A stretch of 63,833 bases of DNA, filler included, from Octopus bimaculoides (GCF_001194135.2; 5 parts of 5 records of this genome joined end to end with filler, not necessarily neighbours in it); one strand, 5' to 3'. Counted from the whole stretch's first letter, positions 1 to 19,569 are shown. Notes: generated by a model not told the origin, from the letters alone. Made by a program: numbers and translations.

Positions 1-483
1 GAAGAAGACACAGCTGATGGCAGCATTACTTTAACTGTGTTCGACGGATTAGCCGATTCTTTTAAGAAGTATTTAGACAAACAAGATATCAAGTCGGACA
101 AAGTGCTCACAGCTTGGTACCAAGCTCTATTCGATTGCTACCTCAATGCCGGATCAAAAGGTTCTTATCAGAAGGAATGTGGAAATGACGCTCTAACATC
201 TTCGTCCAAATTCTCCATTGGAAGGTCCGTCTACAGCACAATCAACGCCGTCTACGTCGTCGCGGCTGCCTTGAACCGAACCATATTGCACTACTGTGGA
301 GCGAACGACAGCGTCTGTCCAGCATTCAGAGCAACACATGATAATTCCGGTGCCATGATACTCAATATTATGCGAGACATCACCATTTTTGATGATAACA
401 AGCAAGTTTTTACTATGAGAAACGGCGAGGGAAGCATCTCTTTTCACATCAACGAGTTCACTCGAAGTAAAGGATATACCAAG
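1..483 (+). CDS. GPCR exon: C-terminal half of first visible VFT (VFT-a), open from window start
   Basis: Frame open from nt 1 ([16 protein letters not shown]...[11 protein letters not shown]...[13 protein letters not shown]...GYTK); donor AAG|GTAAGA at 483/484, phase 0. Confidence 0.9.
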
Positions 484-16900: not shown

Positions 16901-19569
16901 GTCGTATTTTGGAAGGGTCATAATACCAATAAAAATACGCACTGGTTGTGTTCTACTTCAGGTTTTTTTTTTAATTAATCAGTTAATCAAAACCAATCAA
17001 TTATCAAATATTTATAAGGTTGTCAGCAAAAAAATTCGTTGCATTATTGATTTTCTTCTTTTTTCCTTCTCCCTCTACCTTTTTCTTCTTCTTCGTCTTC
17101 TATATGCGTGCATTGTTGTACTTTAGGAGGTTCGTTTACCAGTTAACATACACACTGGTTGTACATCACTTCTTGAATATAGTAATGCGATGTAAAGTTA
17201 TAACAAACCAATCAATAATCAACGAACTGATTGATTAGTTAAGAATAAGACAAAAGTGAACAATAACCAATGCATCTGTTTGTTGGCAAAATGACCCTTC
17301 CAAAATATGACAGTATTGGTTTCAGCACGCGGTTTTACATTAAAATTCTAGTAGAACAAATTCAAAACTGAAATATGTGTTTGTGTGCATGCTTGTGACA
17401 AAGAGAGAGAGAGAGAGAGAGTGAGAGAGAGAGAGAGAAGGAGAGAAAGTGGGAGAGAGAGAGAGAGAAGGAGATAAAGTGGGAGAGAGAGAGAAGAGAA
17501 AGTGGGAGAGAGAGAGAAGGAGAGAAAGTGGGAGAGAGAGAGAGAAGGAGAGAAAGTGGGAGAGAGAGAGAAGGAGAGAAAGTGGGAGAGAGAGAGAAGG
17601 AGAGAAAGTGGGAGAGAGAGATGGTGTGTGTGTGTGTGTTGTTGTACTTTGGGTTGGTCCTTTTGTCAATAAACACACGTACTGGTTGAACATCACTTCA
17701 GTTTTACTGTTAGACAATCTGTTGATAAATGAAGTATTGATTTTAATGTGCGTATGTATATGTATGTGAGTGTGTGTGTGTGTGTGTGTGTGTGCAATCA
17801 TGTATATGTATGTGTGTGTGTGTTTTTTTTGTTTATGTACGTACGCATGTATATAGAATCATATGTGTGTAAAATTTTCTCCGCTTCCTCTGTTTTTCCA
17901 GATCATCCTAAATATTGAATGGCTGCTTCTTGTCAAGCCTTCATCAGTGACCCTATATCCTACGATGAGCGTGCGCAGAGGTTATCCAGATACCCCCATC
18001 AAACTGCGGCACGATTACGAATGGTGCACCCCAGCAGACACCTATGACACCGGCATGGCACTTTCTTTCATATTCGTCATAATACTCGACGTTTTTGCCA
18101 TATGTTTCGGTTCGTTGCTCTGGGACAACGAGAAGAACTACTACGAGTCGCGTTGGATCGTGGTCGCTTGTCTATGTTCCAGCAGTTGTTTCCTCGTCTG
18201 GATGGTAGTCTCGACCTCTTCCGATGCAGTGTTCCGCGACCCAGCTGTAGCTATCGGCAACTTCATCAACGCCACCGCGCTACTGGCCGTCATGCCACTG
18301 CGCAAAGCCATTTTGTTAGTGAAAATCAAAAAAGAAGTCGAGGAAGAGGAAAAGGAGAAACCTTATTCTACGATCTATCGTGAGTATAAAAGATTTCCGG
18401 GCGTGACCATCCTGTCTTTTTTTTTCGGGCACAGTGTACCTAGAACAAACAAGTCTCATCGAGTATACGATGTCTTTCCTAGACTATAAACCAACGCAAC
18501 TTTCATTGAGGAATGTCATGTCTGGAGCTATTTTCTTGTTCAGACGTGTCTGTGTGTAGACACAGGCAAATAGCTTACAGTAGGCGTGGTTGTGAGGTTA
18601 TGAAGCTTGCTTCCCAACCATGTTGGGTTCCTGTCCCACTGTGTGGCTCCTCAAGCAATTGTCTTCTACGATAGCTTCGAGCCGATCAAAACTAAGTGGA
18701 TTTGTTAAGCGGAAATATATGAAGGAGCTTTAGCTGCTGTTTCTAGCATATCGAGTGTCCAGGTGCAGTTTTAGTATGCCAAGCTTTTCTGAACACATCT
18801 GTTACCAAAGGTGTTTCAATCATGACCATTACGTCTTATTGTATATCTAAAACTACGTTGCTTATTGTGTCCTGTTTTTCTATCTTTTGCAAAATGGTAG
18901 GGGTAGTCCCAAGAAAATATATTGCTGTTTACAGCAGGTCAACTGAACTGCGTAGAAAAGCCCTCATTCAAAACAGAATATTACTTGGTAATCTCTTTTT
19001 CGCTCGCCTCGAGCGAATAAATGCTCCGCTAACAACGCAGCTTAACTTAATGCCTCGCCTCGTGCATTTCAATGAATCAATTTGCATTTTAATCTTTTGG
19101 AATGTATTTAGAATAAATAGACAAATTATCATTCGAGATCTCGCTCTGCACAGAACAAATAATGATTTTTTTATCGGTTGGCAGATGTAAGCACTGATCA
19201 GAAAAAACAGCTGTGTTCGCTGACATTAGAAACAAAGCCAGTGGCTCGTTTAGGCTCACGTCTCCGGATGTTTCTAACTGACGAGACAGAGCATGTCGAA
19301 ACACTGGTGAACCAGAATCCCTTGCGCCAATGAGCAGCGAGAGTTATGAGCATATTGTCGCCGTAAAAAGGAGAAATCATTCTCCTGTGACGAGAACAAC
19401 AGCGACTAACATTTTTGCATTTGAATCTACTGAAATGTATTAAGAATAAATATGAGAATCATTGTCATTTAATTAATAATTGATTGCATGATTGATTTCA
19501 GATAACATTGACAGCAACAAAGTGTTCAGTGATTATACAGGGAACAACTACTCAGAGAAGTTTGCTTAA
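1..19569 (+). CDS. Gene model (5'-partial, gapped): multi-Venus-flytrap class C GPCR, >=4 VFT domains + 7TM
   Basis: Exons 1-483, 1713-2339, 3483-3804, 4596-5044, 6177-6324, (gap)7876-9079, (gap)11134-12082, 13391-13726, 14664-15112, 16397-16559, 17902-18379, probable 19502-19569. All visible junctions are GT/AG and phase-compatible. Class C motifs recur (GIFDVH, LDSC/LDTC, RTVP, WFxE(Y/F)Y..FxC, IN(A/S)VY/F), followed by seven hydrophobic segments. Confidence 0.9.
1713..2339 (+). CDS. GPCR exon: Cys linker + N-terminal lobe of VFT-b
   Basis: Acceptor CAACAG|ATC; IGSYD...[10 protein letters not shown]...IGAIFGVH...LDSC...SPAATS...YRTVPGE...FIQ; donor CAG|GTAAGT, phase 0. Confidence 0.92.
2541..2935 (+). 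mobile_element. R4/Dong-type non-LTR retrotransposon fragment (RLE domain), inactivated
   Basis: Conceptual translation with stops: [27 protein letters not shown]...[21 protein letters not shown]...LIDMSIP...K..KYKDL, the zinc-knuckle/RHD/PD..D pattern of RLE elements. Confidence 0.75.
3483..3804 (+). CDS. GPCR exon: middle of VFT-b
   Basis: Acceptor after a pyrimidine tract AACAG|GTG; VVLSGDD...EGICII...; donor ACAA|GTAAGA, phase 1. Confidence 0.85.
4596..5044 (+). CDS. GPCR exon: C-terminal part of VFT-b
   Basis: Acceptor TTTCAG|TC completes the phase-1 codon (Ile); [15 protein letters not shown]...STINAVY...QQK; donor AAG|GTAAGA, phase 0. Confidence 0.9.
6177..6324 (+). CDS. GPCR exon: Cys linker + start of VFT-c
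   Basis: Acceptor TCGCAG|GTC; VGTFNG...[10 protein letters not shown]...YIPGDIVIA; donor GCAG|GTATAA, phase 1. Confidence 0.88.
7022..7249 (+). mobile_element. Internally deleted mariner (MITE-like), 228 bp
   Basis: ~28-bp TIRs (TTGGGTTGTCCGGAAAGTTTGTGCCGAT / ATCGGCACGAACTTTCCGGACAAATCAA), TA on both sides; interior encodes a mariner C-terminus ([30 protein letters not shown]). Confidence 0.85.
7876..9079 (+). CDS. GPCR exon (5' end in N gap): body of VFT-c, the most mGluR-like module
   Basis: Frame open from the gap edge: [24 protein letters not shown]...GGGTSDSS...GYGATT...LRTVPTD...[14 protein letters not shown]...GYKE; donor GAG|GTAAGT, phase 0. Confidence 0.93.
9285..9530 (+). mobile_element. 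tRNA-derived SINE, family B (related copies ~15820-16045 +, ~18581-18712 +, ~23690-23805 -, ~49535-49650 -)
   Basis: Shared head GGCGTGGCTGTGTGGTAAG...GGTTCAATCCC (pol III A/B-box-like) and body AAGTGTCTTCTACTA...GGATTTGGTAGACGGAAACTGAA across several copies. Confidence 0.75.
9531..9620 (-). mobile_element. Short RLE-type LINE fragment
   Basis: Minus strand reads [25 protein letters not shown] (W..P..T.....N.PDIV motif). Confidence 0.5.
11134..12082 (+). CDS. GPCR exon (5' end in N gap): most of VFT-d, a degenerate module
   Basis: Frame open from the gap edge: [22 protein letters not shown]...LALDTC...[16 protein letters not shown]...YSK; donor AAA|GTAAGT, phase 0. Confidence 0.9.
12245..12450 (-). 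mobile_element. tRNA-derived SINE, family A (other copies ~9960-10120 +, ~21635-21806 -, ~21921-22068 +, ~22515-22562 +, ~24119-24334 +, ~29090-29225 -, ~41270-41400 +, ~41700-42070 +, ~51480-52170 mixed)
   Basis: Recurrent consensus AAGGCGGCGAGCTGGCAGAATCGTTAGCACG...GAGTTCAAATTCCGCCGAGGTCGACTTTGCCTTTCATCC...AAGTACCAGT...GGGGTCGATGTAATCGAC, often ending in (ATT)n tracts. Confidence 0.8.
13391..13726 (+). CDS. GPCR exon: C-terminal part of VFT-d
   Basis: Acceptor TGAACAG|CCG; PCTRYE...[12 protein letters not shown]...TFQT; donor ACA|GTAAGT, phase 0. Confidence 0.87.
14664..15112 (+). CDS. GPCR exon: reduced Cys linker, TM1, TM2, start of TM3
   Basis: Acceptor TTTCAG|GTC; VATF...FCPGCRC...[11 protein letters not shown] (TM1)...[20 protein letters not shown] (TM2)...VCAAR; donor AG|GTCAGA, phase 2. 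Confidence 0.9.
16397..16559 (+). CDS. GPCR exon: TM3, ICL2, start of TM4 (absent from the ORF track)
   Basis: Acceptor AACTAG|G completes Arg; [25 protein letters not shown]...[14 protein letters not shown]; donor CAG|GTAAAG, phase 0; 163 nt fits both neighbours. Confidence 0.88.
17400..17620. repeat. GA-derived minisatellite (~24-26 bp unit)
   Basis: Tandem GAGAGAGAGAAGGAGAGAAAGTGG units in the TM4 intron. Confidence 0.85.
17902..18379 (+). CDS. GPCR exon: end of TM4, ECL2, TM5-TM7, start of C-tail
   Basis: Acceptor TTTCCAG|ATC; IILNIEWLL...EWC...NYYESRWI...[18 protein letters not shown]; donor TATC|GTGAGT, phase 1. Confidence 0.9.
19502..19569 (+). CDS. Probable last coding exon of the GPCR ([22 protein letters not shown])
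   Basis: Acceptor GATTTCAG|AT fits phase 1; stop TAA at 19567-19569; strong donor AAG|GTAAGC at 19612/19613. Alternative 3' ends exist (see findings). Confidence 0.5.

Follow-up and report, generated by a model that had tools for sequence, protein, structure and literature searches.

A class C receptor gene of Octopus bimaculoides that very probably encodes five tandem Venus-flytrap domains, and its relatives across Bilateria

To our knowledge, every G-protein-coupled receptor (GPCR) of class C studied so far has one ligand-binding module per subunit, and in the current activation model of the class two Venus-flytrap (VFT) domains close and re-orient over a dimer of seven-transmembrane (7TM) domains. 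A locus of Octopus bimaculoides (GCF_001194135.2) raises the question of whether a single subunit can carry a string of such domains. The locus lies in the first piece (1-22918; 39% G+C, microsatellite-rich, nine runs of N) of the window, by which we mean the whole analysed stretch of 63,833 nucleotides (nt), made of five parts joined with filler. A first-pass annotation had read there one phase-consistent exon chain with at least four VFTs, modules a to d, on one 7TM, in a giant protein of more than 1,900 amino acids (aa). In the analysis described here, the product of the complete gene is very probably a receptor about 2,800 aa long, comprising a signal peptide, VFT1 to VFT5 in tandem, one 7tm_3 domain, and a short C-tail; the count of VFTs rose to five, as the caveat of the first-pass annotation had allowed.

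The concatenated plus-strand frames matched the protein model XP_014781428.1 (LOC106877137, 2158 aa) with 95% identity, and splice-site fitting to the protein model gave 12 plus-strand exons with GT-AG introns (Table 1). The exon boundaries listed in the first-pass annotation proved exact to the base; the exon encoding transmembrane helices (TM) 3 and 4 is not mentioned in it. The product of the first exon is 99% identical to residues 267-427 of XP_014781428.1, and phase-0 junctions were fitted at 483/1713, 5044/6177, and 13726/14664. A Pfam scan of the stop-to-stop translation of the plus strand, a check that the same annotation had proposed, detected ANF_receptor in each of the four modules: a (1-483; E 2e-5, restricted to C-terminal profile positions 231-351), b (1713-5044; E 1e-21), c (7877-9079; E 4e-42), and d (11135-13726; E 7e-18). 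The 7tm_3 domain was detected in the stretches 14664-15112 (profile positions 6-76) and 17902-18379 (profile positions 130-247). The motifs quoted as recurring across the modules were all located in the translation, with GAIFGVH in b, VGIFDVH in d, LDSC in b and c, and LDTC in d. Modules a, b, c, and d are VFT2, VFT3, VFT4, and VFT5 of the five, respectively. One gene (LOC106877137 in the first RefSeq version) is represented in the window by its 3' two-thirds, VFT1 and the greater part of VFT2 being encoded upstream of the window.

Two assembly gaps cut into exons, and the reading frame across them is unreadable in the window; it was therefore settled with a gapless contig of O. sinensis (L002; 20.3 kb, no N). 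Colinearity of the window with L002 extends from exon 3 to past the stop codon, and the exon 5 donor is homologous to the donor at L002 3113. Both gap-cut exons are continuous in L002, and all of its introns are GT-AG with phases equal to those of the window. The O. sinensis coding sequence corresponding to gap 7260-7875 comprises about 37 codons (VFDVHHKG...AIGEVN) and that corresponding to gap 10137-11133 comprises 55 codons (IASANVLG...CTTIEACSEC...MSNAM). The VFT4-to-VFT5 intron of L002 is only 634 nt long, which leaves no room for a 7TM between these two modules. The window is also colinear with the locus in a 39.5-kb part, again without N, of an 18-Mb Argonauta hians contig (L003), where 17 exons spread over 19.5 kb encode 2818 aa. 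Every inter-VFT linker of Argonauta lies in one exon with the start of the next VFT, and this exon design equals that of the window exon 1713-2339. No 7TM exon, start codon, stop codon, or signal peptide was found between the modules in the gapless loci L002 and L003. The events that the first-pass annotation had named as speaking against its reading were looked for in this way: neither 7TM exons hidden in the two gaps nor modules with a start or stop of their own were present, and the order of the window matched both L002 and L003, with no sign of mis-joined contigs. Its claim of one phase-consistent gene rather than a tandem gene array agrees with the gapless orthologous loci.

A spliced transcript with the same architecture was found in cuttlefish. 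The Logan contig L001 (8573 nt) contains a single uninterrupted open reading frame (ORF) of 2767 aa (P0004) with short flanks resembling untranslated regions; a signal peptide, five VFTs, and the 7TM are read from it in a single frame. The 90% identity cluster of P0004 includes a fragment from the cuttlefish Acanthosepion pharaonis. L001 aligned with the cuttlefish genome contig L004 in five blocks of 92-98% identity, 1.3-2.3 kb apart; because these blocks are separated by introns, L001 represents a spliced mRNA, and an origin from intronless genomic DNA was ruled out. At least five contigs of 8.57-8.60 kb, assembled independently, contain this full ORF. Comparison of O. bimaculoides with O. 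sinensis gave ratios of nonsynonymous to synonymous substitution rates (Ka/Ks) of 0.29 for VFT3, 0.26 for VFT4, 0.25 for VFT5, and 0.22 for linker 5 with the 7TM, and no stop codon was present in these compared regions. The ratios indicate that VFT3, VFT4, VFT5, and the 7TM are under purifying selection.

Full-length orthologs of 2729-2818 aa were obtained from Argonauta, the cuttlefish transcript, the bivalves Argopecten and Pinctada, the gastropod Plakobranchus, and the nemertean Tubulanus. They are colinear, each containing five ANF_receptor stretches and one 7tm_3, and a local hidden Markov model (HMM) tally scored all full-length lophotrochozoan members as V5-T. Identity between the units of one protein is 15-32%, and that between units at equal positions in different species is 28-41%. 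In a neighbour-joining tree the units grouped by position and not by species, except that VFT2 and VFT3 of the nemertean paired together. The repeats are thus ancient, since they have diverged within proteins and cluster by position across species, and these alignments indicate five VFT positions that are old and individually conserved.

A profile of VFT5 and the 7TM was searched against 1.84 billion representative proteins, and the best 150 matches were examined. Dozens of them measure 1,750-2,900 aa and combine a single C-terminal 7TM with several VFT stretches. The HMM tally counted five VFTs in molluscs, nemerteans, the brachiopod Lingula, and the nematode Romanomermis; four in Limulus, scorpions, a tick, a mite, crayfish, the insects Timema and Anabrus, the hemichordate Saccoglossus, and the crinoid Anneissia; and three in Branchiostoma and Lytechinus. 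With position-specific HMMs, V1 and V5 were recognisable in arthropods and V1 also in ambulacrarians, the number of middle units being variable. The family was not found in vertebrates or most insect groups within this survey. By these profile matches it is a bilaterian-wide family with three to five VFTs, present in protostomes and deuterostomes. The first-pass annotation had supposed that similar predicted proteins may exist unstudied in molluscs, and the spread in fact reaches far beyond that phylum. Nearly all of these relatives are named 'uncharacterized' in databases, and others are mislabelled 'mGluR3-like'. The octopus receptor shares the features by which the unnamed family was delimited, namely at least three tandem VFTs, a three-Cys linker per VFT, a Cys in lobe 2, and a single C-terminal 7TM.

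Lophotrochozoans have two paralogs, which are arranged in tandem in Argonauta. The second Argonauta gene (L003 34843-39478) also encodes five VFTs, in 2880 aa, on the same strand, with a start that lies 5.4 kb downstream of the preceding gene. The initial exons of this second gene share 64-84% identity with O. bimaculoides LOC106868777, of which, from this comparison, it is the ortholog; LOC106868777 lies on the same 35.5-Mb scaffold as the gene of the window. No start of a tandem paralog was found in the 3.3 kb downstream of the stop codon. The two Tubulanus paralogs bear the consecutive locus numbers LOC141898799 and LOC141898800.

Vertebrate library entries with multiple VFTs were considered as family members and were ruled out by their NCD3G motifs and internal 7TMs. 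Nine very long predictions (P0018, P0028, P0029, P0044, P0050, P0068, P0079, P0080, and P0084) contain up to 11 ANF_receptor stretches, and these look like V2R/OlfC-type tandem genes fused by gene prediction. Mining of multi-VFT architectures by domain count alone would wrongly include such fused models.

The modules are joined by linkers that differ from the cysteine-rich domain of mGluRs. No match to NCD3G (PF07562) was obtained at E<=1 in the O. vulgaris, O. bimaculoides, and Saccoglossus proteins, and the motif CC[FWY]xCxxC was absent from all family members tallied, whereas it occurs once in most canonical single-VFT mGluR-type representatives of the same list. The receptor therefore falls outside the mGluR/CaSR/T1R subgroup, having no NCD3G and five VFTs rather than one per subunit. 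Each VFT is followed instead by a short linker with three Cys, as in O. sinensis linker 4 (CTTIEACSEC); the exception is linker 3 of cuttlefish P0004 (VFT3-VFT4, about residues 1417-1450), which has one Cys where the other species examined have three. All 35 VFT units have the Cys in lobe 2, which we take to be at the position of the residue that mGluRs use to bond their cysteine-rich domain. Since this Cys is invariant and the number of linker Cys is odd, each VFT is probably stapled to its following linker by a disulfide. The Cys of the inter-subunit loop is invariant only in VFT1 and VFT5. This loop presumably corresponds to that carrying the inter-subunit disulfide Cys of mGluRs (mGluR1 Cys140), which suggests that VFT1 and VFT5, the top and bottom layers, make covalent contacts in a dimer.

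The 7tm_3 domain of the third RefSeq product of the locus (P0177) scored 97.4 bits against a cut-off of 33.5, and orthologs scored 87-144 bits. A 7tm_3 above the gathering score and extracellular ANF_receptor domains place the receptor in class C. Invariant in six orthologs (A1 numbering) are the TM3 Cys C637 and the Cys C725 of extracellular loop 2 (ECL2), the VKA..NWR motif of TM3 (V657-K658-A659...W663-R664), and the pre-TM6 motif ESRWI (E765-S766-R767-W768-I769). We take the TM3-ECL2 Cys pair, the TM3 Lys, and the pre-TM6 Glu to be the class C hallmark positions.

Pocket residues were tabulated for 35 VFT units with mGluR7 from the PDB alignment as reference and with mGluR1 numbering. In mGluRs, Arg78 and Lys409 bind the side chain of glutamate, and Ser165, Thr188, Asp208, Tyr236, and Asp318 contact the alpha-amino-acid backbone. 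VFT4 is the most mGluR-like module and the most conserved position, and the complete O. sinensis VFT4 matched mGluR7 and mGluR3 in the PDB with E 1e-60 and about 30% identity. It keeps the equivalents of Ser165, Thr188, and Asp208, with Tyr236 as F/Y; the Asp318 equivalent is G/K/S in cephalopods and E/D in bivalves and the nemertean. The backbone-contact residues are partly kept in VFT3 and mostly divergent in VFT1 and VFT2. In VFT5 they are kept in bivalves and the nemertean but lost in cephalopods, where the equivalents of Ser165, Asp208, and Tyr236 are missing. At the Arg78 column, Arg was found only in Pinctada VFT2 and Lys in Pinctada VFT5; at the Lys409 column, Lys was found only in Plakobranchus VFT2 and Arg in Tubulanus VFT5. 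None of the 35 units has both equivalents, so that the signature of a glutamate-binding mGluR is missing, and VFT4 has N/L at the Arg78 position and S/G/L at the Lys409 position. Because the backbone contacts are kept while Arg78 and Lys409 are absent, the ligands of VFT4 and, less completely, VFT3 are likely to be amino-acid-like but not glutamate. The absence of the glutamate-specific residues also makes the label 'metabotropic glutamate receptor 3-like' unjustified. An AlphaFold2 model of O. sinensis VFT4 and VFT5, built from a shallow alignment of seven sequences, showed two confident clamshells with a mean predicted local distance difference test (pLDDT) score of 78.5, and its top Foldseek matches were the ectodomains of mGluR2, mGluR3, and mGluR5, with TM-scores of 0.8-0.92.

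These features can be combined in a proposed mechanism. The receptor would be a dimeric G-protein-coupled sensor in which clamshell closure travels down a stack of serially coupled VFTs. Lobe 2 of each VFT would be tied to the following linker and through it to the succeeding VFT at lobe 1 or, in the case of VFT5, to TM1, so that closure events could pass along the chain to VFT5 and then to the 7TM. VFT1 and VFT5 would provide the covalent dimer contacts, and VFT4 and VFT3 would bind the amino-acid-like ligands. Cephalopod VFT5 has lost the pocket signature and yet is kept under purifying selection, and for this reason it is probably a relay to the 7TM and not a canonical amino-acid site. More broadly, and with more doubt than confidence, we suggest an undescribed pan-bilaterian class C subfamily of 'poly-VFT receptors', with three to five serially disulfide-coupled VFTs and no cysteine-rich domain, that may act as a single-molecule integrator of several small-molecule ligands, the distal pockets gating or biasing the membrane-proximal relay VFT. 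We know of no GPCR with such an activation logic.

Several points weigh against the reading of one five-VFT receptor gene or against the mechanism built on it. The 7TM is distant from the solved mGluR 7TMs (E 5e-6). In the AlphaFold2 model, linker residues 508-525 have pLDDT <50 and the predicted TM-score (pTM) is 0.53, and with so shallow an alignment a fixed packing of VFT4 on VFT5 finds no support. Ligands, dimerisation, disulfide topology, and G-protein coupling are inferred from sequence alone, and continuity at the two gap-cut junctions is taken from orthologs. The module boundaries 483/1713, 5044/6177, 9079/(gap), and 13726/14664 are all in phase 0, so that module-skipped isoforms could be made in frame. 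Finally, current RefSeq has three products at the locus on the 35.5-Mb scaffold, namely LOC128250823 (995 aa), an unnamed product of 429 aa, and LOC106877137 version 2 (729 aa), as if the VFT modules were separate neighbouring genes; class C tandem arrays are common, and the fused V2R-like vertebrate models with up to 11 VFT stretches (P0018, P0028, P0029, P0044, and P0050) show that such arrays can be mistaken for one gene. The breaks between the three products (P0175, P0176, and P0177), however, fall exactly at gaps 7260-7875 and 10137-11133, which identifies the split as an artefact. The first product passes the exon 5 donor and stops within the intron, where the corresponding ORF of the window ends at 6362; the second opens with a Met inside VFT4 and continues past the donor at 9079; and the third begins with a Met inside VFT5. 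These starts (MAANLVS… and MLNKSNIF…) lack a signal peptide, and one of the read-throughs ends with …VKHI and a stop. The older model XP_014781428.1 had bridged the gaps by artificial joins (…IAGIILF/KAGIFQ… and …GYKE/TTPIIV…), and the O. vulgaris model is continuous (2570 aa), although it skips the exon equivalent to 1713-2339 in frame. With continuous exons in the gapless orthologs, an intron too short for a 7TM, linker exons that span consecutive VFTs, and a spliced cuttlefish mRNA with all five VFTs and the 7TM, separate genes are very improbable; true fused V2R artefacts, moreover, keep NCD3G motifs and internal 7TMs, and this family has neither. Slightly less credit still is due to the idea that the multi-VFT appearance results from contigs that were mis-joined or duplicated in a draft rich in gaps. 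Nine gaps occur in the piece, and an exact duplicate of 92 bp at gap 15266-15481 is a local assembly error, but modules only 15-32% identical are not duplicated reads, their order and orientation match two independent gapless octopod assemblies and the 2570-aa O. vulgaris model, and the architecture is found again in more than 10 phyla and classes.

The strongest of the alternatives, although itself unlikely, accepts the gene as real and holds that it is expressed mainly as shorter isoforms, which retain one to four VFTs after tissue-dependent in-frame skipping. The phase-0 boundaries, the exon skipped in the O. vulgaris model, and the three or four VFTs with variable middle units in other phyla all fit such a scheme. 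Five VFTs were nevertheless present in 5 of 5 full-length cuttlefish transcripts that had been assembled independently, transcripts with a skipped module were not seen, and the modules are under purifying selection and kept in all lophotrochozoan orthologs. A Logan member of 1765 aa looks like a truncated ORF, since its contig has full transcript length (8545 nt). That the locus is decaying as a pseudogene or survives as a remnant without signalling, as the loss of the Ser165, Asp208, and Tyr236 equivalents in cephalopod VFT5 might suggest, is scarcely credible in view of exons without any stop or frameshift, Ka/Ks values of 0.25 for VFT5 and 0.22 for the 7TM, a 7tm_3 score of 97 bits with invariant class C hallmark residues, and a transcribed ortholog in cuttlefish. 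A single gene for a five-VFT receptor is thus the preferred reading, and the RefSeq split and the 'mGluR3-like' names of orthologs are misleading.

Table 1. Exons of the receptor gene and assembly gaps in the first piece of the window
Feature	Position	Strand	Remarks and basis
Exon 1, VFT2 C-terminal lobe, 3' part	1..483	+	begins upstream of the window; phase-0 GT donor after 483
Exon 2, linker 2 (IGSY...CPSFCYEC, three Cys) and VFT3 N-terminal half, one frame	1713..2339	+	translation, splice fit
Exon 3, VFT3 middle	3483..3804	+	splice fit; colinear with L002 380-701
Exon 4, VFT3 C-terminal part	4596..5044	+	phase-0 donor; splice fit, L002
Exon 5, linker 3 (VGTF...CPGKCDNC) and first VFT4 strand (GDIVIAG)	6177..6324	+	phase-1 donor GT 6325-6326
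Exon 6, large VFT4 exon, 5' end cut by gap	7876..9079	+	ANF_receptor E 4e-42
Exon 7, VFT5 main exon, 5' end cut by gap	11134..12082	+	Pfam, splice fit
Exon 8, VFT5 C-terminal part	13391..13726	+	phase-0 donor; splice fit
Exon 9, linker 5 (VATF...CPGCRC), juxtamembrane spacer, and TM1 to start of TM3	14664..15112	+	7tm_3 profile, splice fit
Exon 10, TM3-TM4	16397..16559	+	tblastn with P0001, P0002, P0003; splice fit
Exon 11, end of TM4 through TM7 and start of C-tail	17902..18379	+	7tm_3 profile, splice fit
Exon 12, last coding exon	19502..19569	+	TAA stop 19567-19569; splice fit
Six gaps, wholly intronic	1022-1606, 2958-3330, 5117-5650, 12518-13047, 13901-14459, 15266-15481		
Gap hiding the rest of intron 5 and ~110 nt of the 5' end of the VFT4 exon	7260..7875		window 7877 = L002 4222; L002 exon start 4112
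Gap over the 5' end of the VFT5 exon; ~165 nt hidden, linker 4 among them	10137..11133		window 11138 = L002 6224; L002 exon start 6059

The 92-bp exact duplicate consists of 15108-15199 and 15482-15573, which flank gap 15266-15481 and include the last 5 nt of the TM1-TM3 exon with its donor; the gap probably stands for no missing sequence, overlapping contig ends having been spuriously joined there. All gaps are bordered by microsatellites or low-complexity tracts of the types (T)n/(TTC)n, (TAT)n, (AAT)n, (TA)n, (AC)n, and (TG/TA)n, for example at 822-1021, 1607-1700, 2344-2560, 2930-2957, 3331-3440, 5058-5116, 12470-12517, 13048-13330, and 13850-13900, and these borders probably explain the assembly breaks. 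Short interspersed repeats of two families (about 100-200 bp, 72-84% identical) occur in the introns and downstream of the gene, at 9284-9481, 15821-16014, and 18582-18715 (+) and at 9975-10117, 12295-12452, 21673-21804, and 21919-22066. Copies were also seen in O. sinensis introns (L002 3343-3536 and 5645-5798), and one family yields a recurring pseudo-ORF, '...SRPRWNLN...'. Downstream of the gene, 21067-21427 contains tandem or overlapping repeats of about 100 bp that are 76-80% identical, as does L002 at about 16600-17130. Intronic (AC)n/(TG)n tracts are abundant and give long spurious ORFs on both strands. For the ORFs 2581-2898 (+), 9341-9733 (-), and 22431-22805 (-), a likeness to remnants of retroelements or mariner-type transposons found no support in the Pfam scan, which gave no match; fragments in these three transposon-like ORFs read '...KPDIVVRDQ...', '...RPDIVIWE...', and '...TPDQKRTRL...'. 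An Rfam scan of the whole piece detected no RNA family.

The sequences themselves are not new, being public predictions that are unnamed or mislabelled, and no description of the architecture was found. A multi-VFT class C GPCR was not described in the full-text literature searched, subscription-only literature lying outside its scope, nor was it met with in targeted reading of two relevant papers (PMC6307864, PMC12716839). A December 2025 survey lists only ANF with NCD3G, ANF alone, and Cache with EGF as metazoan glutamate-family receptor architectures, with one ligand-binding module per subunit (PMC12716839). The family may have been overlooked because it was not found in vertebrates here. 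Five VFTs per chain raise the questions of how closure is transmitted through a stack, which pockets bind, and whether signals are combined. Genuine poly-VFT receptors need to be separated from fused V2R gene models, and a modular ectodomain of this kind could interest engineers of VFT-based biosensors.

Among known systems, mGluR1-8 resemble the octopus receptor in the VFT fold, the intradomain Cys, the lobe-2 Cys, and a 7tm_3 with the TM3-ECL2 Cys and the Lys/Glu lock positions; they differ in having one VFT with NCD3G, whereas the octopus receptor has five VFTs with three-Cys linkers instead. In the non-vertebrate class IV mGluRs, which include the fly receptor of Mitri et al. 2004, the backbone residues are kept and Arg78 and Lys409 are replaced (PMC6307864). 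VFTs of the octopus family likewise keep backbone-contact residues with Arg78 and Lys409 replaced. In GABA-B receptors, as stated in the survey, the VFT is joined to the 7TM without NCD3G (PMC12716839). The lack of NCD3G is thus shared with the octopus receptor, but GABA-B has one VFT per subunit, is an obligate two-gene heterodimer, and has no Cys linker; no GABA-B chain occurred among the best 60 of 91 PDB matches for VFT4 or among 32 matches for the 7TM. The VFT of GB2 binds no ligand and serves transduction, a role that, by analogy, resembles the relay proposed for cephalopod VFT5.

Ionotropic glutamate receptors likewise stack clamshell layers, the amino-terminal and ligand-binding domains, on one subunit, the distal layer modulating the proximal one; they differ in being ion channels and in having two layers, not five, drawn from different clamshell subfamilies. 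The fused vertebrate V2R/OlfC/CaSR-like models share great length and many ANF_receptor stretches (11 in P0018) but are artefacts with NCD3G (CCFDCxxC), internal or missing 7TMs, and near-identical recent units, whereas in the octopus family the units diverged anciently, the only 7TM is C-terminal, and NCD3G is lacking. The sensor kinases BvgS and EvgS carry one to five tandem VFTs (PMC5573083). They are bacterial, belong to another periplasmic-binding-protein subtype, have a single-pass anchor and a kinase output, and are homologous only at the level of the general fold; with dimeric chains and a membrane-proximal VFT that is mainly a transducer, they nonetheless form the closest working analogue of the octopus receptor.

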